Part shown: positions 7,606 through 59,110 of the stretch, piece after piece | Position numbering within the stretch: the first letter of the stretch is position 1 | Layout: every line of letters begins with the position of its first letter | Origin: Octopus sinensis | Taxonomy: Eukaryota | DNA: 64,000 nucleotides | Assembly: GCF_006345805.1 (NCBI RefSeq) | Contig: NC_043000.1 | Coordinates: 75,020,001-75,084,000 of the forward strand | Direction of reading: 5' to 3' | The notes under the pieces: generated by a model | Databases searched by the model: none | What the model saw: only the letters and a program-made list of their open reading frames with translations | Told to the model about the DNA's origin: nothing | Position numbers and translations under genes: made by a program

Positions 7606-8747
7606 GGAGGCTTATAAATCTAATATTTTCCTATCCTTCCTTAATACTAGTTCCCATATGCTGCTCATATCTGCACTAGGTCTGCTTAGGAGGTTATTAT
7701 GTCCTAGCAAATATCCATCAAATGTAAATAATGTACATAATTCCTCATCTCTCAAATACAGAACTGTAACACTGTTAGTAGTTTTCTGATTCTTCTATCT
7801 AGGTTTCTCGATTCACTGATCTTCCAGTTTATTATGTTAATGCTGTAATTTATAATAGGTATGGCTAGTGTGTTTATCTCTATTATCTTATTTTTAGCAT
7901 TAAGTTCAGTGCTTAATATTAGTCTAACTCTTTTGTAATACCCCCTCCTAATTTTTTCTTTCATTCTGTGTGTTGTATTGTAGCTGTTTCATCTGTTCCT
8001 AGATATTTGTACAAGCAGTTGTAGTCTAAATATCTACTTTCTGTGTTTATGCTGAGTGCAGTGTTTTCAGTGCTGAATAATTTGCCTCTTCTCAGTGTGA
8101 CACTGGCAAATTTGTCCAACCCCATGGTCATTCCAATGTCATTGCTGAGACTCTGGACAATTTTGATAAGGTTTCTCTGTTCCGTGGTGCTTTTAGCAAA
8201 AAGTTTTATGTCATCCATGTACAGGAGATGGCTTATTTTTTGTCCATAACACCTATAACCCATGGTGGTTTCATTTAACAAGTTTGTTAGCAGAATCAGA
8301 GAAAGGCAGAAAAGCAGGGGTAACTGAATCTCCCAGGAAAATCCTCCTTCTTATGGGTATAGGGTAGGTTTTAATAACTTGTGAGTTATTTTTTAATGTT
8401 ATACTGGTTTTCCAGTTTGCCATATTTAATATACTTTAGTAATGGTGGAGTTAACTTATTTGTGTGGAGAGATTCCAGCATCCATGAGTTTGGAACACTG
8501 TCAAATGATTTCTGGCAATCAATCCAAGTCATGTTCAGGTTTGTCTTTCTCCTCTTACAGTCCTATGTAATGGCTCAGTTTACTAGAAGTTGCTCCTTAC
8601 AGCCATACATCCCTCTCCAGCACCATTGTAGTTTTCTAGGTGCTTTATAGGCCAGTTATAGATGACTGATGTTAGGGTTTTGTAGGATGTTGATAAGCAT
8701 GTTATTGGTCTGCAATTTTGTGGGTGTACAGTGTTTTTGTTATTGGC

Positions 8748-11700
8748 ATGGTTTGTGAATATCATAAACTCCCTTCCTTCTAGGAAATGACAAAAATGCT
8801 TCCCCACAAAATAAATAGCAAGTAATTCTCTTCCAAACATGCTATAGCGCATCCCAGCAGGCTTGAGATGATGGCAATAAAATGCCAGCAGTTGCAGAAT
8901 TCCTTGGTCAGCTTGCTGTAATATGGCACCCACAGCTGTATCTGATGCATTTACCACAAGCAAAAGCTTTGCATTGGATTTTAGGTGTACTAACATTGAA
9001 ACATTAGCCAGGGCTTGTTTAACAGTTTGAAAATCAGCAACAAGTGATGGGGAAAGGGTGATAACTTCATTCCTCTTCTTCCAATCTTTCAGCAATGCTG
9101 TAAGTGAACTCAATTTCTCCACACAATTTGGAATGAATCCATGATAAAAATTCGCCAAACTGAGGAAATGGTGAAGCTGCTTAAGAGAAGATGGAGAAGG
9201 AAGCTTCTGAATAGTTTGTACTTTCTCTGGGAGAGGACGAATTCCATTATATGGTCTAAGAATTCCAGCAATGCAGAACCAAACACACTCTTTGCTGGGT
9301 TGATTTTGACTTGATAATTTACATAAATGCTGAAAAAAGTAGTGTTAGATGCTGGATATGTTCTTCCTTTGTAGAACTTGTGATGAATAAATCATCAGTA
9401 TAAGCATAGACGAAGTTGTGACCATAAATGACTTTGTCTATAAACCTTTGAAAGGTGCTAGTGGTATTCCACAATCCAAAAGATATTGAAAGGAATTCAA
9501 ATGAACTAAAAGGAGTAGTAAGTGCAGTCTTTGGTATATCGTCTGGATTTAAAGGAATCTGGTGATATGCCTGGACAAGATCAACCTTAATAAAGACAGT
9601 ACTACCAAGCAAGGTAGCAAGAAAAGTCCTGCAAGTGTGAAAAGGGTATCTGTCCAGGGTCGTAATAGCATTTAATCTATGATAATCCCCAACTGGCTGG
9701 AAATCCATAACTTCTTTGCAAACCAAAGAAGGATGAATAAGCCCCAACTGGAGCATGTGGTTGAATTCTGCTTTTGCAGCCTTGAGTTTATCAGGAGGAA
9801 GATGGCGGGGATAAGCAAACACTGGTGAACCATTGGTGTTGATAAGATGCCTCATAGAATGAACAGGATCAGTGACTGGGAAAGTTAAATTGGTAAGCTC
9901 CAGGAAAGAGTCAAGAAGTGAATGGTAGGTATCACCAGATACAACACTAAAAAGTACCAGGCTTACAACAAGAGCAAATGCTGGACAACCAGAAACTGAT
10001 AACTCCATTAGGCTATCCAACAAATGCTGTTGGTGAACATCCATCAACAGTGAGAAGTGGTGGAAGAAATCTGCCCAGAGATTAGGATAGGGTAGATCAG
10101 CAATCACAAAACATCTATCCAAGGAGAGAGATATCTGCCCAAATGTGTCAATAGAAGAATTGTTGACAACTTGCTGAGAAATTCGAGAGAGAACAGACTT
10201 ATCTGTTACAAACTTTACCGGCCAGATGCTACATGAAGTACCAGTGTCAACCATAAAATTCTTATGCAAGTTGGGGTCCAGCACAAAAAAATGCATGATT
10301 AGGGGCTGACGTAGTGGGAGCTGCTGACATGCTCAGTGTCTCCCTAGCTAGATTTCTTGACTTGAGGATGAACATGGTGACACACACTTGTGTGCTTTTG
10401 TGCCAAAATGTGCATGATACAAGTATACAGTCCTTGACGAAGAAGGAGAGGAATAACAACGACGACTGAATGAACGGATATGACACCAGAACTCTCGAGG
10501 TACACACATCTTTTCAATCTGTCTCGTAAATTGCTGAATTGCTTCCATAGTCGCATGCATGATTAGAAATAAGATCAACAGTAACTATATTAGACAATGC
10601 AGAAATGACTTCAGTGGAAGAGGTTTAGTTTCCAGAAAATTCCATTATTTTGTCAGCTGAAGTGGCTATCTGATCTGCAGTGCTGACTTCAACCATAGGA
10701 GCTAAGATGGCCTGGACATTCTGCAGGAAACATAAGAAGAATAACTGTTTTAGGAGAGAGCTGTCTTCAGGAGACACGTCTGAGGTTGCGAATGCGACAA
10801 GGAAATTCTGTGAGCTTTCTGTCACCCAAATGCTCATAGTTTACAAGGGTCTGGAAGCGGCGCTCAACTGAAAAGGATGTCCTGCAAAAAAACCTCTTGT
10901 TTGATTGAGGAATAAGTTGCATCCTTTGGCATATCTGTTATCAAATCTTTCAAATGAGTAGCCAAGGCAGAAGGAAACACACTAAGCAAAATGTCAAGTT
11001 GCTGTTGAGCTGACTGGATATTATTCACAACAAAGTATGCCTCTTCTTGCGCGAAGTACAAAGGAACATCTCCACAAAAGAGCGGGAAGGAAGAATGCTG
11101 CCTGTTGCTGTCAAGAAATGTAGACGAATAGAAAAATATCAGCATGAAAATCAATAGACTACCCAGGAAATTGAAGAAGCGAGGCTAGGTGAAGAGGAGG
11201 AAAGCGAAGCTATAGAGTACTAAACATGATGGTTGTAGCAGTAGCAGCAAGGAAGAACTTCACTATACTTGGTTGCTGGAGTCAGTGATGCTGTCACATC
11301 ACCCCCGTGAGAAGACGAAGAAGACAATACCATTCAAAAGTTGAAAAAATAACTCACAACTATATAACTTCGTTTGCTGTCCACTTAAGTTGTTAGGTAA
11401 ACTGACTGAAAAGATGTAGGGTAAGAAGAGACAGGAAAACGTTGACTTGACGCATAAAAACATTTTTTTCTTCTTTCGGCGTCACCATTTTAGTGAAGAG
11501 TCAAACATGAATCCAGTTTTGTTGTTTGTGTTATATTAAGCTGTGTATACATTGGCCTGACAAATAACAGTCTGTCAAAGTTTAGTTAACAAGTTTTTAT
11601 ATAACTGTGCTTTTACAAAAAGTGCATGTGAAATAGTAAAAGGTGTACAAACGTGGTTGTTTTATAGCTAGTGAAAATTAGTTGGTCAGTAGGTGGTTGG

Positions 11701-12049
11701 AGAATAAGCCAGTTAGCATTAATGGTTAAAGGTTCATCTTATGTGATTCATGCTGGAACAGAAGAGAGTAAGGAATGCACCAGCTACATAATGAGGTAAC
11801 TGTAATGGCTGAGAATAAAGCAAGCCAACCTCTCTGAGAGCCAGGAGTCAAGAGCTCAGTCCAATGAGAGTTGCACCAAATAAGATAAGAGAGACTAAAT
11901 GTCCGTCTTGAGTTTGTATATCTTTCCAGTAGAAATGCTATGTCGCAAAGACTGTTGGGAGTACAGTGCTCTCAAAGCACCAACTACCTACAACAGAATG
12001 AGGGGACATAACTCTGCTCTTTTCCTTTAATTATTATTTAACTATGACA
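8748..12049 (-). mobile_element. Mag-like Ty3/Gypsy element, 5' part only (LTR, PBS, gag, PR, RT, RNase H); integrase and 3' LTR absent
   Basis: Probable LTR about 11489-12049 starting TGTCAT; canonical PBS TGGTGACGCCGAAAG (about 11473-11487); gag FPLFCGDVPLYFAQEEAYF; PR VDTG; RT DLVQAYHQIP and YTDD; RH VVNASDTAVGAILQQ...YSMFGRELLAIY. Many stops and frameshifts. Confidence 0.8.
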
Positions 12050-33639: not shown

Positions 33640-33842
33640 TACTCTTTTACTTGTTTCAGTCATTTGACTGCGGCCATGCTGGAGCACCGCCTTTAGTTGA
33701 GCAAATCGACCTCGGGACTTATTCTTTGTAAGCCCAGTATTTATTCTATCAGTCTCTTTTACTGAACCGCTAAGTGACGGGGATGTAAACACACCAGCAT
33801 CGGTCGTCAAGCAATGCTAGGGGGACAAACACAGACACACAA

Positions 33843-33875
<33 letters not shown>

Positions 33876-34046
33876 CATATATACGACAGGCTTCTTTCAG
33901 TTTCCGTCTACCAAATCCACTCACAAGGCATTGGTCAGCCCGGGGCTATAGCAGAAGACACTTGCCCAAGATTCCACGCAGTGGGACTGAACCCGGAACC
34001 ATGTGGTTGGTTAGCAAGCTACTTACCACACAGCCACTCCTGCACC
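33640..34046 (-). mobile_element. Family A SINE
   Basis: Full-length reverse-complement match to 3655-4075. Confidence 0.85.
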
Positions 34047-34304: not shown

Positions 34305-36940
34305 TATAGCTTCACATGGTGTAGAAGACAACTGGAGGTTTTTACGGGACAACATGCTGAGAGCCACTGACCAGATCTGCGGATGGTGCAAAGTCCCCTC
34401 TCAACCCAAAGTAACGTGGTGGAGGAACAATGTTGTTGACAGGGCTATTAGAGAAAAGAAACAGGACTGGAAGGACGGTGGTAGCAGGGAATTGTATCAG
34501 ACTGCCAGAAGGGAAGCTAGGAGACAGGTTTATTTAGCTAGAGGGGAAGCAGATAAGACAAAATTTGCCAATGTTCTGCACTGTGAGGACCAAAGAATTG
34601 AGGTATTTCATGTTGCAAGACAGTTTTGCAAGACAGATGTTGGTTGCTATGATGTTGGTTGCAAGACTATGAAAGGTTGCTCAATAAAGAAAATGAATGG
34701 GAGAAAGAGAGTCTGCAGAATGTTGACTCAACAGAGGGGCCAGCTATCCGAGTTGACAGTACCTTGGTAGATAAAGCAATTAAAAGTATGAAGACAGGGG
34801 AAGCCCCTGGCCCATCAGGAATCACTGCAGAGATGCTCAAAATATCTGGCAGTGTCGGCTATAGCCTAGTCACCCGTATAGCTAACCAGGTGATACATGA
34901 AGGAGTCATATTCAATGACTGGTGTAGCAGCGTAATAGTCAACTGCTACAAAGGTATAGGTGAAGCTTTAGATACAAATAATTACAGAGGTATCAAGCTA
35001 TTGGATCAGGTAATGAAGGTCATGGAGAGGGTCATAGCCCAACTAATTAGGGAGAGATGCAGTTTGGTTTCATGCCAGGGAAAAGCACCACTAATGCTAT
35101 ATTTCTGGTAAGACAGCTGCAGGAGAAATACCTAGCCAAAGATAAGCCCCTGTACCTGGCTTTCGTTGACATGGAGAAAGGCTTTGACAGGGTCCCCCGA
35201 TCCCTTATCTGGTAGTCAATAAGGAAACTAGGGATAGATGAATGGTTAGTGAGAGTCATGCAAGCCATGTACAGGGACACTGTCAGTAAGGTTAGGGTTG
35301 GTAACAAGTACATTCAAGAATTCAGGGTAGAGATAGGGGTCCACCAAGGTTCAGTCCTTAGCCCCCTCCTATTTATCATAGTCCTCCAGGCAATAACGGA
35401 GGAATTCAAGACAGGATGCCTCTGGGAGCTCCTCTATGCTGATGACCTTGCTCTAATTGCTGAGTCACTATCAGAACTAGAGGAGAAGTTTCAAGTGTGG
35501 AAACAAGGATTAGAATTGAAGGACCTTAGAGTCAACTTAGCTAAAACCAAGGTCCTAATAAGTAGGAAAGCAGGCAAACCATAAATCCCTTCAGGTAGAT
35601 GGCCCTGCTCAATCTGTAGAAAAGGCATAGGTAGAAACTCTATAAGATGTACCCAGTGTAAGCTATGGGCACATAAGAAGTGCAGCAATATCAAAGGAAA
35701 GCTAACTAGGAGGCTCATTTTTGTACGTGGCAGATGCTCTGGAGCAATAAATAACACTGAAAATGTGCAGAGAACAACTTCTGCCACATTCCAGGGAGAA
35801 AAACTAGACGTAGTTGATAGCTTCCATTACCTACGTGACCAAGTGAGTAGCGGGGAGAGGGTGCACTGAAAGTGTAGCTGCTAGAATAAGAATAGCCTGG
35901 GTTAAGTTCAGAGAGCTCTTACTTTTGCTGGTGACAAAGGGCCTCTCGCTCAGAGTAAAAGGTAGACTGTACGACGCATTTGTGTGAACAGCCATGCTAC
36001 ATGGCAGTGAAACATGGGCCATGACTGCTGAGGACAAGCGTAAGCTCACAAGGAATGAAGCCAGCATGCTCCGATGGATGTGTAATATCAGTGTGCATAC
36101 TTGACAGAGTGTTAGTGCCCTGAGAGAAAGTTTGGACCTAAGAAGCACCAGATGTGATGTGCAAGAGATACGACTGTGCTGGTATGGTCATGTGGAGAGA
36201 ATGGATGTGGATAGTTGTGTGAAAAAGTGCCACACCCTAGCAGTTGAGGGAACCTGTGGAAGAGGTAGACCCAGGAAGACCTGGGATGAGGTGGTGAAGC
36301 ATGACCTTCAAACACTGGGCCTCACCGAGGCAATGACTAGTGACTGGGACCTTTGGAATTATGCTGTGCTTGAGAAGACTCGGGAAGCGCAAGTGAGACC
36401 ATAACCTTGTGGCCTATGCCAGGGGTGTAACCAGTCCACTTATGCATGCCTTTCCCTCATTGGACACTAAAGTCTGCTTGCAAAGACCTGTTGAGTCAAG
36501 TGAAATCGAAATTGAAGTCAAATTCGATGACTGGCATCTGTTGCTAGTGGAGCGTTAAGAGTACCACACATGTGAAATCATTGCCTCCGTGCCGATGGCA
36601 CATTAAGCACACCATTCAAGTGTGATCGTTACCTGCGTTGCCTTACTAGCACTTGTGCTGGTGGCATATGAAAAAACATTCGAGCGAGCTCGTTACCAGT
36701 GCCGCTGGACTGGCTCCCGTGCAGGTGGCACTTAAAAAGCACCATTTGAGCGTGGCCATTACCAGTACCACCAAACTGGTACGTAAAAGCACCCTCTACA
36801 CTCTTGGAGTGGTTGGCATTAGGAAGGGCATCCAGCTATAGAAACTTCCAGATCAGATTGGAGTCTAGTGCAGCCATCTGGTTCACCAGACCTCAGTCAA
36901 ATTGTCCAACCCATGCTAGCATGGAAAGCAGACGTTAAAC
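34305..36940 (+). mobile_element. RTE LINE (RT domain with frameshifts + 3'UTR)
   Basis: APGPSGITAEMLK, NYRGIKLL, AFVDMEKGFD, GVHQGSVLSPLLF, LLYADDL, RLCWYGHV motifs. Confidence 0.9.
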
Positions 36941-40087: not shown

Positions 40088-42096
40088 AAGGTTACGGTCA
40101 TAGCCCAACTGATTAGAAAGAGAGTCAACCTAGACGAGATGCAGTTTAGTTTCATGCCAGGGAAAAGCACCACTGATGCCATATTTCTGGTGAGACAGCT
40201 GCAGGAGAAATACCTAGCCAAAGATAAAACTCTGTACCTGGCTTTCGTTGACTTGGAGAAAGCCTTTGACAGAGTCCCCTGATCCCTTATCTGGTGGTCA
40301 ATGAGGAAACTAGGGATAGATGAATGGTTAGTGAAAGCTGTGCGTGCCATGTACAGGGACGCTGTTAGTAAGGTGAGGGTTGGCAACGAGTACAGTGAAG
40401 AATTCCGGGTGGAGGTTGGGGTCCACCAAGGCTCAGTCCTCAGCCCCCTCCTATTTATCATAGTCCTCCAGGCAATAACGGAGGAATTCAAGACAGGATG
40501 CCCCTGGGAGCTCCTCTATGCTGATGACCTTGCTCTAATTGCTGAGTCACTATAAGAACTCGAGGAGAAGTTTCAGGCGTGGAAGCAAGGATTAGAATCA
40601 AAGGGCCTTAGAATCAATCTAGCTAAAACCAAAGTCCTAATAAGTAGGAAGGTAGACAAATCTCAAACGCCTTCAGGTAGATGGCCCTGCTCGATCTGTA
40701 GAAAAGGCGTAGGTAGAAACTCTATAAGATGCACGAAGTGTAAGCTATGGACACATCAGAGGTGCAGCAATGTCAAAGGAAGGCTAACTAGGAAGATAGT
40801 TTTTGTATGTGGCAGATGCTCTGGTTCAATAAAGACTGAAAGTGCGCAGAGACCATCTTCCGCCACATTCCAGGGAGAAAAACTTGAAATAGTTGATAGC
40901 TTCCATTACCTACGTGACCAAGTCAGTAGCGGGGCTGGGTGTGCCGAAGGTGTAACTGCTAGAGTAAGAATAGCCTGGGCAAAGTTCAGAGAGCTCTTAC
41001 CTCTGCTGGTGACAAAAGGCCACTCGCTCAGAGTAAAAGGCAGACTGTATGACGCATGTGTGCGAACAGCCATGCTACATGGCAGTGAAACATTGGCCGT
41101 GACTGCTGAGGATATGCGTAAGCTCGCAAGAAATGAAGCCAGTATGCTCCGTTAGATGTGTAATGTCAGTGTTCATACCCGACAGAGTGTAAGTGCCTTG
41201 AGAGAAAAGTTGGACCTAAGAAGCATCAGATGTGGTGTGCAAGAGAGGCGTCTACGCTGGTATGGACACATAGTAAGAATGGATGAAGATAGTTGTGTGA
41301 AAAAGTGCCACACCCTAGCTGTTGAGGGAACCTGTGGAAGAGGTAGGCCCAGGAAAACCTGGGACGAGGTGGTGAAGAACGACCTTTGTGCTTTAGGTCT
41401 CACCGAGGAAATGACCAGAGACCGAGACCTTTGGAAGTATGCTGTGCACGAGAAGACCCGGCAGGACACATGAGGCCATAACCCATGGCCCCTACCTGGG
41501 ACGTAGTCAGTTCACCTGTGCATACCTTCCTTCTTGGGACACATAACTCTACTTGTGAAGACCTGTTGAGGCAAGTGAAAATCAAATCAAATCAAATCAA
41601 AATCGATGAACATCAATGGAATTTGTAGTTTTGTGGTACCAGTGCCGGTGGCACATAAGAAAACCATCCGAATGTGGCCATAGCCAGTACCGCATCGTCT
41701 GGCCTCCATGCTGGTGGCACGTAAAAAACATCATCCGAGCGTGGCCGTTCGCCAGCCTCGTCTGCCACCTGTGTCCGTGGCACATAAAAAAAAAAAAACA
41801 CCATCCAAGCGTGGCTGTTCACCAGCCTCATCTGGCACCTGTGTCCGTGGCACATAAAAAACACCATCTGAGCGTGGCTGGCCGTTCGCCAGCCTCGTCT
41901 GGCACCTGTGTTGGTGGCACATAAAAAGCACCCACTACATTCACGGATTGGTTGGCGTTAGGAAGGGCATCCAGCTGTAGAAACACTGCCAGATCTGACT
42001 GGCCTGGTGCAGCCTTCGGGCTTCCCAGACCCCAGTTGAACCGTCCAACCCATGCTAGCTTGGAAAGCGGACGTTAAACGATGATGATGATGATGA

Positions 42097-50150: not shown

Positions 50151-51183
50151 TATTCTTTTACTTGTTTCAATCATTTGACTGCAGATGTGTGGAGCACTGC
50201 CTTTAGTCAAGCAATTCGGCCCCAGGACTTATTCTTTGTAAGCCTAGTACTTATTCTATCAGTCTCTTTTGCTGAACTGCTAAATTACTGGGACATAAAC
50301 ACACCAGCATTAGTTGTCAAGCAATGTTGGGGGGGACAAATACAGGCACACAAATACATACATGCATACATGCATGCATACACACACACACACACACATA
50401 CACACACACATACACTAGAAAAAATAAGGTACTCAGAAATCTGGATGGTTTTATATTTACAGATATTTATTAATATGTCACATGTACTTATGCGTACCTT
50501 TCCTTCATCGGACACTAAACTCTGCTAGTGAAGACCTGTTGAGGCAAGTGAAATCGAAATCAAATTCGATGACTAGCATCCGTACTAAAGGAGAGCTAAG
50601 AGCACCATCCGAGTGTGATCATTGCCATAGCAGCTAACTGATCGTTACCTGTGTTGCCTTACTGGCACTTGTGCTGGTGGCATATGAAAAAACATTCGAG
50701 CGAGCTCATTGCCAGTGCCACTGGACTGACTCCTGTGCAGGTGGCACATAAAAAACACCATTTGAGCATGGCCATTGCCAGTACTGCCTGACTGGCCCTC
50801 GTGTTGATGGCACGTAAAAGTACCCACTACACTCTCAGAGTGGTTGGCATTAGGAAGGGCATCCAGCTGTAGAAACTCTGCCAGATCAGATTGGAGCCTG
50901 GTGCAGCCATCTGGTTTGCCAGTCCTCAGTCAAATCGTCCAACCCATGCTAGCATGGAAAGCGAACGTTTAACGATGATGATGATGATGATTATGATATA
51001 TACATATATACATACACACACACACAACAGGTTTCTTTCCGTTTCTGTCCACCAAATCCACTCACAAGGCTTTGGTTGGTCTGAGGCTAGAGTAGAAGAC
51101 ACTTGCCCAAGGTGCCATGCAGCAGGACCCAGAACCATGTGGCTGGAAAGCAAGCTTCTTACTACACAGCTGCTCCTGCACCT
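50151..51183 (-). mobile_element. Family A SINE split by an RTE 3'UTR insertion (+ strand, about 50490-50995)
   Basis: SINE 3' half 50151-50410 and 5' half about 51000-51183 surround an RTE tail ending in (GAT)n. Confidence 0.7.
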
Positions 51184-54523: not shown

Positions 54524-54855
54524 TGTACTGAGTGTGCGATTTGAATATAGAGGCACCTACCTTCTCTTCGTAGTGATAGAGACCCTCCAGAGACGACTAG
54601 TCCTTCCTCACAGCCCCGACCCGAACACTAACGATAGCAGCTGCTAGCCCAAACCCTTAGCGATGTCCTCGCACGTCTTGTCACCTCCACGACCCACGTT
54701 GGAAAGGGCGATTTCCGCTCCCTGCGCACGCCTGACAGCTGACCCCTTCCGCTTGCCCCGCTTCCGGTCAACACACCCGGCTGCTGACGTCCGGCTGCTG
54801 ACGTCCGGCTGCTGACGTCCGGCTGCTGACGTCCAGCTGCTGACGTCATCCCACA
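54524..54855 (-). repeat. 3' LTR (332 bp), TGTGGGATGAC...CACTCAGTACA
   Basis: Preceded by a purine-rich tract (aagatcagggtggtg) directly after the integrase stop; bounded by the TSD. Confidence 0.85.
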
Positions 54856-54868
54856 CACCACCCTGATC

Positions 54869-56299
54869 TTAAAGATCACAATCTCTCCGCTCCATGTTGT
54901 AGTCTACCATCCAACCGGGAGAGCGCCTTGCTCGTCGAGATCTTCTCAAGCTGGGCTCCTCATTCTCCCCCTCTCCAGAATCATCGTCCGTCGAAGCAAC
55001 AATCCTGCGAAGGTCCAAGACGTGTCGTGGTGTTCCATCTACGGATATGTTGCTTCTGGAATTGATCGCCGTCACCGTTCCTCTGCTCCATTGAGACGTA
55101 CAGCACGCCTTTGGTGGCTTGACCCAGACTTCCTCCCCTATTTTCACGCGAACGGGTCCCTTCTCTTCCTCGTGACCCTCCGGCGCTTTGCTCGGGTGCC
55201 TCCATTCATATTTGAACACAGCTCTCTGCGGCACAGATTCCTCAGCTTGTCCGGATTGGGGAGACAAGTTGTACCAAAAAACTGCTTCAAGCGGCGAAAT
55301 GTACCCTCTTTCCGCTATGGCCTTGACTGTCCGATGGTGCCTCTCCACGATCCCGTTACCGCCCGGCCTATATGCTGCTCTGAACAAGCGTCGCACGTTC
55401 CACCGATCAAGCATAACCCTCAATGCTTCCGAACGAAACGCCGCCCCGTTGTCCATCAGTAGTTCTTCCACGGGACCTCTCTCTAAAAATATCCCGTTCA
55501 GGATCTGCACGATCTCGTCAGCAATGCCCGATCTCAACTCCCTCCAAATGGCCAGCCGGCCCGGCCCACAGTCGACCATGGAGAGGTACATTTGCTGACG
55601 GTAGTGTGTCACATCCACAGCTAGCCTTTTCCAGTTCTGCTCCACGGAAAGGCTTCCCTGTTCATGCCCACACGGAGCAGGGTCGATGGACTGACACCTG
55701 TTGCAGCTCCCGACCACCTTCCGGACGCTTCTCCTAGTGACGTCAGCATCAATTTTTTTTGCCAGATACAGGGTCCTGTCCACACCCAGGTGATGCATAG
55801 CGTGCAGTTTCTTCAGTTCAGAGTCATCCAACCGACACGCCACAGCTATCCCTTTCCGGGCCTCCTCCGGTTCTTCCAACCACGCCCTTTTCACCCTGGT
55901 CAGTACGTCCGCCCTGTTTTTCTCCGAAGGCACGAAAACCATGTTCAGCTTCAGTCCGAATTCGGCGATCAATTCACCTAGAACTCCTAGACGGCGCTTC
56001 ACTAACATCTCCGCAGCACCTTTCGTCCGCACTCTCCTGTCACCGGTGATCACCGATCCTACCCAGCCAAGCACAGTGGCCGAATCCGTCCGCATTTCAA
56101 TCGTGCGCAGCCCCCATTTCAAGGCCAAGTTCACCCCTTTCAGCAGCGTGTCTAATTCGGCGACATTGATGTGGTTGAAATCATCTGCTTTCTGAAGCCA
56201 GGCCGCGTCCTCCACCGCAGTGCCTTCGATTGCCAACACCACCCCTATCGCTATAGTGCTAGCATCACACCAGACGGTCCCGCATTTCGTCTTGGGCAC
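54869..56299 (-). CDS. Gypsy pol 3' half: RNase H + integrase (open, 476 aa)
   Basis: RH WCDAS..INVAELD..TDS; HHCC HAMHHLG..CNRC; D-D(35)E AVDVTH / MDNG / IVERHH; C-terminal GPY/F-like segment. Confidence 0.93.
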   Translation of the reverse strand: MPKTKCGTVWCDASTIAIGVVLAIEGTAVEDAAWLQKADDFNHINVAELDTLLKGVNLALKWGLRTIEMRTDSATVLGWVGSVITGDRRVRTKGAAEMLVKRRLGVLGELIAEFGLKLNMVFVPSEKNRADVLTRVKRAWLEEPEEARKGIAVACRLDDSELKKLHAMHHLGVDRTLYLAKKIDADVTRRSVRKVVGSCNRCQSIDPAPCGHEQGSLSVEQNWKRLAVDVTHYRQQMYLSMVDCGPGRLAIWRELRSGIADEIVQILNGIFLERGPVEELLMDNGAAFRSEALRVMLDRWNVRRLFRAAYRPGGNGIVERHHRTVKAIAERGYISPLEAVFWYNLSPQSGQAEESVPQRAVFKYEWRHPSKAPEGHEEEKGPVRVKIGEEVWVKPPKACCTSQWSRGTVTAINSRSNISVDGTPRHVLDLRRIVASTDDDSGEGENEEPSLRRSRRARRSPGWMVDYNMERRDCDL

Positions 56300-56307
56300 T
56301 CACTACA

Positions 56308-56319
56308 AGCTATTTCGGC
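56308..56319 (+). promoter_or_regulatory. Putative non-canonical PBS AGCTATTTCGGC, complementary to nt 1-12 of tRNA-Phe(GAA)
   Basis: Immediately follows CACTCACTACA (10/11 match to the LTR 3' end); exact reverse complement of GCCGAAATAGCT (metazoan tRNA-Phe 5' end, recalled from memory). Confidence 0.7.
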
Positions 56320-56353
56320 TGTTCGTAAACATTCACATTTTTTTTTCAACACG

Positions 56354-57118
56354 ATGTCTGCAAAAATTAGGATCGCCAGTGACGTTGTCAGACCTTTTAA
56401 CGGCGAAGGCGATGTAGTGGCCTGGATTCGCAAAATCAGGCTGGTGGCGAGACTGCAGGGCATAAGTGACGTGGCGAGTCTTATGGCGCTGTATTTGGAA
56501 GGGAGCGCGTTGTCGCTCTACCTGGAGATGGATGAAGAGGAACGGCTCAGCGATGAGAATATAGAGCGACGCTTGTGTGACGCATACACGGAATGCGAGT
56601 ACACAGCTTTCGCTAAGCTAGGTGCAATCAGGTGGACGGGAGGCCACATGGACGACTTTGCATCAGAAGCTAGAAGGCTAGCGACTCTGGCCGGGTTTGC
56701 CGGAGAAGGACTGGAGAGAGCAGCCCGACTGGCGTTCGTGAATGGGTTCCCCGACGATGTAGGGATTCACCTACAACGACTGCTCGGGGTTAAAAAGATG
56801 CCATTGAGTGAACTTGTAGCTCAGGCTCGCGCATTGACGAGACACTCTGGGTGGAAGGCGATAGCGATGGCGGTGACGGAGGCGCGTAAAGACGGACGAC
56901 GTCCCGAGAAAGAGGTACAGAAGCTCACCGTGCAACGAGAGCGGCCGTTCTCAGGACGGTGTTTTAGATGCCAGGGACCGCACATGGTGCGGGACTGTAC
57001 GCAGCCGGGGCCCGTTTGCTATCGATGCAGGCAGACAGGGCACATTGCCCGTGATTGCGGCCAGGGAAACGACTGCGGGGAAGTTGCTGCCTCTCGAACT
57101 TTCCCCTCAAACGAGTAG
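56354..57118 (+). CDS. Gypsy gag (254 aa) with zinc knuckles
   Basis: MSAKIRIASDVVRPFNGEGD...; CFRCQGPHMVRDC and CYRCRQTGHIARDC. Confidence 0.92.
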   Translation: MSAKIRIASDVVRPFNGEGDVVAWIRKIRLVARLQGISDVASLMALYLEGSALSLYLEMDEEERLSDENIERRLCDAYTECEYTAFAKLGAIRWTGGHMDDFASEARRLATLAGFAGEGLERAARLAFVNGFPDDVGIHLQRLLGVKKMPLSELVAQARALTRHSGWKAIAMAVTEARKDGRRPEKEVQKLTVQRERPFSGRCFRCQGPHMVRDCTQPGPVCYRCRQTGHIARDCGQGNDCGEVAASRTFPSNE

Positions 57119-57123
57119 AGGCA
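57064..57123 (+). promoter_or_regulatory. -1 programmed ribosomal frameshift signal (GGGAAAC + H-type pseudoknot)
   Basis: G GGA AAC in gag phase; 6-nt spacer; S1 57077-57085/57097-57106; S2 57088-57094/57117-57123. Confidence 0.8.
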
Positions 57124-58127
57124 CTATTGGAGATGGTGCCATTGATTGACGTGGAGGCCGAGGGGGAGACGTTCAAGGCCCTTGTGGATACGGGCTGTAC
57201 GACCACCCTGGTGACTTCGAGGGTGACGAAGGAATGGAACGGGGTGAGTAGTGTCCGGGCGGTCGACGGCAGCGAAATCCGTTGCAGAGGCAAGGTAGAG
57301 ATAGTGGTGCGCAGCGCGACGCTAAGGCTGCAGGCAATTGTGGCTGAACGCGTGATAGATGGAGTTGATGTGGTGATGGGGATGGACGCCATCAACTGCC
57401 TCGGTGGCGTCAGTGTTGTGGGAAATGAGGTCACGTTCGGAAGTGTGGGGACGTCGTGCACTGCGAGTCAGGATCGCCAGAGAGAGCAGAGCTCCGTGAG
57501 GGACTGCACTGCTTACACCATCGAGGACAAAGACTTTCAGGCAGCGTTCGATGGTCAGCGGTGGACGATAGAGTGGCGATGGAAGGACGAGCCCCCGATG
57601 CTGGAGAACAGGGTGAGCTGTTACCAGCATACCCTGAAAGGCCACGCCAGGGTCGAGTTTGAAGACGAGGTGGAGAGGTGGATCGAGGAAGGGGTCCTTG
57701 TCCCTTGGAAGGAGGAGGTAGCGGGCGGAGTGCTACCCCTGATGGCGGTGGTGCAGCCTACGAAGGGAAAAGTCAGACCGGTGCTGGACTTCAGGAAGCT
57801 AAACCAGCACATATCGTGTCACACGGGAGGTGAGGCGACAGACGTTTGTGGTGAGGCATTACGTAAGTGGAGACAGTCGACTGAGGCAGCGGCGATTGTC
57901 GACTTGAGATCGGCATACTTGCAGCTCCATGTGAGCGACAAACTGTGGCGATATCAGCTGGTGCGGTACAAGGGCCGGACGTACTGTCTAACCAGGCTGG
58001 GTTTCGGGCTGAATTCCGCTCCGAAGATCATGGCGGCAGTGCTTAGGTCTGTCCTAGGGAAAGACGGCAAGATTAGAAAGGCCACCAGCTCCTACATTGA
58101 CGACATTTTGGTGGACGAAACTGTAGT
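57064..58127 (+). CDS. Gypsy pol 5' half: protease + RT truncated just after YIDD, in the -1 frame to gag
   Basis: ALVDTGC (PR), VRPVLDFRKLN, DLRSAYLQ, LGFGLNSAP and YIDDILV; runs into an inverted LTR remnant at 58126. Confidence 0.92.
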
Positions 58128-58136
58128 CATCCCACA

Positions 58137-58497
58137 GAGATATATAAATGTAAGGAGAATTAGGTATTAGAAGAAGGGAAGAAAGAAGAAAGAAAAATAT
58201 AAAAGAGTAAGTTGAAGGAGGGATTGGGCAAGATTAGTTGACTGGTAGTAGATGATATGGTAGTTTTGGCTGAATCACAGGATTCTCTCTCCCCCATGAC
58301 CAGAAATATTTTCTCACCCTCTCCCCTCCAATTTATCTGTTCTTCAAGTACCGATCCCACTACTAAATCCTGTGATTCGGCCAAAATTTCTATATCATCT
58401 ACTATCAGTCAACTAACCTTGCCCAATAGCTCCTTCCTCACACTACCTTATATTTTTTTTTCCTCCTTACATTTACATATCCCTCTCATACTGTGCC
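58137..58497. repeat. Foldback/MITE-like imperfect palindrome
   Basis: Arms about 58137-58287 and 58364-58497 are reverse complements (mirrored ORFs 58160..58384 and 58257..58622). Confidence 0.7.
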
Positions 58498-58715: not shown

Positions 58716-59110
58716 TACTCTTTTTACTCTTTTACTTGTTTCAGTCATTTGACTGCGGCCATACTGGAGCACCGCCTTTAATCGAGCAACTCGACCCTGG
58801 TACTTATTCTTTTTGTAAGCCCAGTACTTATTCTATCGGTCTCTTTTGCCGAACCGCTAAGTAATGAGGACATAAACACACCAGCATCGGTTGTCAAGCA
58901 ATGCTAGGGGAACAAACACACACACGCATATATATATATATATATATATACATATATACGACGGGCTTCTTTCAGTTTCCGTCTACCAAATCCACTCACA
59001 AGGTTTTGGTCGGCCCGAGGCTATAGTAGAAGACACTTGCCCAAGGTGCCATGCAGTGGGACTGAACCCGGAACCATGTGGTTGGTAACCAAGCTACTTA
59101 CCACACAGCC
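58716..59110 (-). mobile_element. Family A SINE
   Basis: Full-length reverse-complement match to 3655-4075. Confidence 0.85.

Follow-up and report, generated by a model that had tools for sequence, protein, structure and literature searches.

Introduction

Three kinds of minus-strand primer for LTR retroelements are, to our knowledge, supported by experiment, namely tRNA 3' ends, internal cuts of initiator tRNA-Met or tRNA-Arg, and self-priming. Canonical tRNA-Phe-primed elements such as mouse IAP and IAPE use an 18-nt TGG... primer binding site (PBS) complementary to the 3' end of the tRNA (PMC7472051). Drosophila copia, as well as Ty5, 1731 and Tca2, lacks a TGG PBS, and its primer is thought to be the 5' part of a host tRNA, about 39 nt long, with a 3'-OH made by internal cleavage; these elements appear to pair with the anticodon-stem region (about nt 25-39) of initiator tRNA-Met or tRNA-Arg (Kikuchi et al. 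1986; Ke et al. 1999). In Tf1/sushi self-priming, an 11-nt PBS without TGG directly abuts U5, the primer is the 5' end of the element's own transcript, and its 3'-OH has to be created by a cut at the end of an RNA:RNA duplex, and a run-off at the primer's 5' end defines the length of the PBS. Additionally, dictyostelid Skipper elements have lost the TGG PBS and have no LTR self-complement, so that an unconventional primer is suspected, but their polypyrimidine tract has no known partner (PMC5006619).

Here, we analyzed a 64,000-nt stretch of the Octopus sinensis genome (GCF_006345805.1, NC_043000.1, positions 75,020,001 to 75,084,000), referred to as the window. An initial annotation had proposed that an LTR retrotransposon in this window carries, directly at the LTR edge and without a TGG, a 12-nt site complementary to the 5' end of tRNA-Phe. 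We found that this site is conserved at the same position in related elements. In contrast to the canonical tRNA-Phe-primed elements, the site corresponds to the opposite end of the same tRNA species and is 12 nt long. In contrast to copia, it matches nt 1-12 including the 5'-terminal nucleotide, so that the primer would be only 12 nt long and cut in the D-stem, and the element, with the domain order PR-RT-RH-IN, is not of the Ty1/copia type. In contrast to Skipper, the site has a precise candidate tRNA partner.

Results and Discussion

A 12-nt site complementary to the tRNA-Phe 5' end abuts the LTR terminus

On the plus strand, the region upstream of gag reads GGG-CACTCACTACA-AGCTATTTCGGC-TGTTCGTAAACATTCACATTTTTTTTTCAACACG-ATG. 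The 11-mer CACTCACTACA at 56297-56307 is a remnant of the U5 end of the 5' LTR, the rest of which is missing. It is followed without a gap by the candidate PBS AGCTATTTCGGC at 56308-56319 and by a leader of 34 nt at 56320-56353, which contains no TGG and is not conserved among relatives. The LTR terminus CACTCAGTACA occurs once in the window, on the minus strand at 54534-54524, and is matched by the plus-strand 11-mer at 10/11 positions, while farther upstream the similarity stops. The first 3 nt of the 11-mer (CAC) also read, on the other strand, as the Val codon of the RNase H piece, and the junction is therefore ambiguous by 3 nt.

The 12-mer occurs once in the window, with 0.08 matches expected at up to 1 mismatch. 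Its reverse complement, GCCGAAATAGCT, equals the first 12 nt of human tRNA-Phe(GAA) as given by a published primer sequence (PMC10505166), and this 5' end is probably conserved across Metazoa, although no tRNA gene was found in the window by ARAGORN, by pattern search or by Rfam from which the tRNA-Phe of the host could have been read. An exact 12-mer at one fixed position has a chance of about 6e-8 per candidate tRNA end, which is roughly 3e-6 over about 50 tRNA 5' ends and still about 2e-4 if any internal 12-mer of any tRNA were allowed.

The window copy is a rearranged relic of a compact gag-pol element

The ATG at 56354 opens a gag ORF of 254 aa (56354-57118, plus strand) with a CCHC zinc knuckle (PF00098, E = 5.6e-7). 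It is followed at 57055-58128 by the protease and the N-terminal part of reverse transcriptase, through YIDD, and homology to relatives stops at about 58128. On the minus strand, an open RNase H-integrase ORF of 476 aa (RVT_3, rve; DAS motif onward) runs from 56299 to 54869 and abuts the gag piece at 56297-56299 in inverted orientation. Downstream of it lie a polypurine-tract-like AAGATCAGGGTGG (54858-54870, minus strand) and a 3' LTR of about 332 nt (54524-54857, minus strand; TGT...ACA), which ends with CACTCAGTACA and whose start is ambiguous by 2 nt (54857 or 54855). Its U3 holds five 14-nt tandem units with CRE-like GACGTCA cores. The element is thus in two head-to-head pieces that share 3 nt at the junction, the connection between RT and RNase H is missing, and no second copy was found in the window by blastn. 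The LTR that the initial annotation had described as intact is the 3' LTR of the inverted RNase H-integrase piece, so that this copy is rearranged and dead and cannot replicate.

In order to place the family, we compared its domains with those of known groups. Pfam found only RVT_1, DUF7047, an RVT_3/PF00075-type RNase H, rve and zf-CCHC. None of the BEL/Pao signatures (Peptidase_A17, DUF1759 and DUF5641) and no Gypsy-type RT_RNaseH were detected, while the Gypsy element at 8748-12049 in the same window does hit RT_RNaseH_2. By these signatures, the family is neither BEL/Pao nor classical Gypsy. The TGT..ACA termini also exclude Troyka, which is defined by CG..CG ends (PMC12440569). Interestingly, all solved-structure matches of the pol, whether used as a single sequence or as a profile, are retroviral integrases and MLV-type RT, although the PDB is dominated by retroviruses. 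The layout, with gag-pol only, TG..CA LTRs and a cellular/retroviral-type RNase H after an extra domain (DUF7047) behind RT, resembles that of Odin retrotransposons, which have a tether plus a new RNase H, lack env, and were reported only from sea anemones (PMC9040795, PMC12440569). In the absence of a phylogeny, this resemblance, which may extend to lokiretroviruses and Retroviridae, remains a lead.

The site is conserved at the LTR edge of related elements

To obtain information beyond the relic in the window, we searched for relatives of its gag protein and found 34 homologs at 36-50% identity. We retrieved 17 contigs encoding twelve of them, most of which are 4.1-4.5 kb contigs of unknown hosts from metagenome or sequencing-run assemblies, with gag, a 920-990-aa pol and one collapsed LTR. 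Two were uninformative, since L003, to which the RNase H-integrase ORF was aligned by tblastn, is 5'-truncated, and the contig L132 starts with a sequencing adapter. All ten informative element sequences (14 contigs) carry AGCTAT-NNN-GGC directly after the LTR end (..ACA or ..ATA). Only the bases opposite tRNA positions 4-6 vary. GAA is found in the window and in the contig L133, which has exactly the 12-mer of the window, as well as in a decayed form, AGTTATTTTGAC, in L004. TAG (AGCTATCTAGGC) is found in L001, L005, L002, L006/L007, L011 and L134/L135, GTG (AGCTATCACGGC) in L008, and TCG (AGCTATCGAGGC) in L009/L010.

When the sequences were stacked on this block, the information per column was maximal over the nine fixed positions and intermediate over the three variable ones, and it fell to near zero right after GGC and upstream of the last three LTR bases. 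The LTR edges are supported independently, since in relatives the LTR start lies 2 nt after a conserved AGATCAGGRGGG tract and forms short terminal inverted repeats with the LTR end. These data exclude that the match in the window is due to chance and speak strongly against debris in a degenerate copy, as could have been suspected from its rearrangement, its 11-nt LTR remnant and the ambiguous junction. Debris from read-through copying of a whole tRNA primer would moreover be preceded by the rest of the tRNA complement and not by the LTR end. Scans of IMG/VR viral contigs with gag and pol revealed no relatives, and a 14-mer PBS scan gave 70 hits, none of which encoded the element, so that these are chance matches.

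tRNA-Phe as the candidate partner

Read as RNA, the complement of the site is GCC-NNN-AUAGCU, which corresponds to acceptor-stem positions 1-7, U8 and A9, and D-stem G10-C11-U12. We scanned metagenome contigs for GCCKHGATAGCTCAGTTGGGAGAGC and found, among 122 matches, the 5' ends GCCGTGATAGCT (32 times), GCCTAGATAGCT (11 times) and GCCTCGATAGCT (7 times). The sampled ones were called tRNA-Phe(GAA) by ARAGORN, and most share the usual metazoan-type body. Eukaryote-type tRNA-Phe(GAA) genes with each non-GAA 5' end thus exist, but no element copies were found on the tRNA-bearing contigs. The existence of a matching tRNA-Phe is, however, a weak test, because the pattern was built around tRNA-Phe and all six allowed combinations at positions 4-6 turned up. 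On a gag NJ tree the site types are interspersed, with GAA in three places, which fits tracking of the host tRNA rather than simple descent, though only weakly, because the tree has no bootstrap values.

It is possible, though unlikely, that the site binds a different host RNA with the same terminal 12 nt, such as another tRNA isoacceptor with a GCCNNNAUAGCU 5' end, a tRNA-Phe-derived pol III transcript or a pre-tRNA form, in which case priming would still come from a 5' fragment but not from mature tRNA-Phe. In one dense tRNA array (L063), tRNA-Thr(UGU) begins with GCCTCTATAGCT, which also fits GCCNNNATAGCT and is 1 nt from the TCG type, and the isoacceptor for the non-GAA types is not settled. 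Furthermore, the TAG-type tRNA-Phe genes are multi-copy and carry a conserved 30-nt 3' trailer, which suggests an unusual precursor. In contrast, the 12-mer of the window and L133 matches canonical metazoan tRNA-Phe exactly, exact tRNA-Phe(GAA) matches exist for all other types, and no exact non-Phe match was found among the 50-odd tRNAs examined.

We also considered self-priming of the Tf1 kind, with which the lack of a TGG and the shortness of the site would agree. However, no complement of 10/12 or better was found anywhere in L001, L002, L005, L006/L007 or the window LTR, the five element sequences scanned, even when G:U pairs were allowed; the best is a 9/12 complement, GCGGAAATCGCC, in the window LTR. 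The conservation of the 12-mer across relatives whose LTRs are otherwise unalignable fits a host partner. On the five element sequences scanned, we regard self-priming as very unlikely. Two alternatives named by the initial annotation, namely a TGG or variable sequence at this position in related copies and complementarity of the 12-mer to the 5' end of the element's own transcript, thus found no support in the sequences examined. Neither a conserved second contact with tRNA-Phe nor a hidden 3'-CCA site was found. Only T-rich, G:U-heavy stretches opposite the D-arm were observed in U5 or the leader, at varying distances, which we judged to be chance.

A proposed priming mode

The results suggest that the 12-mer is the minus-strand PBS of a family of compact (about 4.1-4.5 kb) gag-pol LTR retrotransposons, and that its partner is the 5'-terminal 12 nt of cytoplasmic tRNA-Phe(GAA). 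We consider this the most probable explanation and hold it with moderate confidence, since PBS type and tRNA-Phe type have not been matched within one genome, and both the use of the tRNA as primer and the origin of its 3'-OH are inferred. The argument rests on the pattern as a whole, i.e. the fixed position at the U5 edge, the length that ends at the first nucleotide of the tRNA, the variation only where acceptor stems vary, and the exact match of the window type to canonical tRNA-Phe. Alternatively, the 12-mer might be a conserved cis element with another role, such as packaging, dimerisation, translation control or integrase end recognition, with a complementarity to tRNA-Phe that is coincidental or serves only to bind the tRNA without priming. 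The fixed parts (AGCTAT, GGC) could indeed be a protein or RNA recognition motif, and direct evidence of priming is lacking. We regard this as improbable, because the site lies exactly where LTR elements must start minus-strand DNA, no alternative PBS (TGG, polypyrimidine, self-complement) is present in the sequences examined, each variant equals a real tRNA-Phe 5' end, and the block ends exactly at tRNA G1.

In the proposed cycle, the zinc-knuckle Gag helps tRNA-Phe nt 1-12 (acceptor 5' strand, U8, A9 and the first three D-stem bases) to anneal to the PBS. The resulting 12-bp RNA duplexes are predicted at -18.7 to -21.4 kcal/mol, and these tRNA nucleotides apparently carry no modification that would block Watson-Crick pairing (only m2G10). 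RT could only extend a 3'-OH at U12, because the next template base is the last base of U5 and the tRNA bases C13-G15 cannot pair with the obligatory ..ACA end. The primer would therefore be either a pre-made 12-nt 5' fragment or an annealed tRNA cut at the duplex end, by the element's RNase H, as Tf1 appears to do on an 11-bp RNA duplex, or by a host enzyme, as proposed for copia. A 12-nt primer with its 3' end inside the D-stem has no known biogenesis route, and the proposed priming mode is not supported by experiment or small-RNA data. Plus-strand strong-stop DNA would later copy the 12-nt primer and run off at G1, which would explain why complementarity and conservation stop exactly there. 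If the site is re-copied from the primer, as in some retroviruses (PMC7472051), this would also explain why it seems to follow host variants.

A more far-reaching reading, which we put forward only tentatively, is that a whole lineage of metazoan LTR retrotransposons primes with the first 12 nt of intact host tRNA-Phe. The element's RT/RNase H would cut the annealed tRNA between U12 and C13, in a trans version of the Tf1 self-primer cut, and the site would be re-copied in each cycle and track the acceptor-stem variant of the host. This would be a fourth class of minus-strand primer for LTR elements and would give 5' tRNA fragments a direct link to retroelement replication or control.

Host-tRNA priming of LTR elements is known, whereas the use of the other end of the tRNA appears to be new. 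Full-text searches revealed no report of a PBS for a tRNA 5' terminus, although an older report cannot be excluded because most subscription journals were not covered, and the Odin and Troyka papers do not discuss a PBS. As far as we know, PBS finders in LTR annotation tools test only tRNA 3' ends and, if so, would report this family as lacking a PBS. A conserved site for the extreme 5' end of tRNA-Phe would raise the concrete biochemical question of who makes a 3'-OH at U12. It would also predict that 5' tRNA-Phe fragments, an abundant but functionally obscure class of small RNA, can either prime or block these elements, mirroring what 3' tRFs do to mammalian ERVs (PMC7472051). Finally, the family may be closer to retroviruses than to classical Gypsy or BEL elements, which would make it relevant to how priming evolved on the way to retroviruses.

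Rearrangement of the element and its sequence context

The element in the window is rearranged, in that the RH-IN-LTR piece is inverted against the PBS-gag-PR-RT piece, with breakpoints at 58128 and 56299. The two pieces share 3 nt of microhomology (CAC / GTG) at 56297-56299, and the RT-RH connection and nearly the whole 5' LTR are lost. All three ORFs are still open, indicating that the event, or a misassembly, is recent. A foldback / inverted-repeat element at 58136-58484 starts 8 nt after the RT breakpoint. Its arms (58182-58284 and 58366-58468) are 83% complementary, and outer arms were located at 58136-58157 and 58463-58484. The LTR contains five tandem 14-nt units, GACGTCAGCAGCCG, in U3 (~54775-54850, minus strand). 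Each of these units contains a CRE/ATF-like (T)GACGTCA core, which makes the region a likely enhancer array.

Other repeats were also observed in the window. A Gypsy-type RT and RT_RNaseH_2 fragment was found at 8583-10296 on the minus strand. The initial annotation had proposed an ordinary TGG PBS for this Gypsy, and a TTGGTGC lies near 11975 on the minus strand. Two direct repeats longer than 1.1 kb (35054-36158 and 40136-41236), which are about 5.08 kb apart and 88-90% identical, may be the LTRs of another element or a segmental duplication. Furthermore, several interspersed SINE-like repeat families and many microsatellites occur at many sites, for example at 50878-50976, 58730-59100, and 33680-34038.

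Contigs and metagenomic tRNA genes

Among the contigs collected for comparison with the element, L132 begins with an Illumina adapter sequence (acacgacgctcttccgatct) at positions 1-20, and its 5' end is thus an assembly artefact. Very dense tRNA gene arrays of unknown origin that contain the GTG-type tRNA-Phe were found in the metagenome loci L063, L030, and L027, the first of which comprises 33 tRNA genes in 5.8 kb. In L063, tRNA-Thr(UGU) begins GCCTCTATAGCT.

The tRNA-Phe(GAA) genes that start GCCTAGATAGCT are multi-copy and were observed in the metagenome loci L014, L091, L092, L102, L112, L115, L087, and L100. These genes carry a conserved 3' trailer of ~30 nt (accccaggttagccccgggggtcgg) before the T-run, as well as ..ccg upstream. 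The CCCAGG of the trailer could pair with the 3' acceptor strand, which would free the 5' strand.
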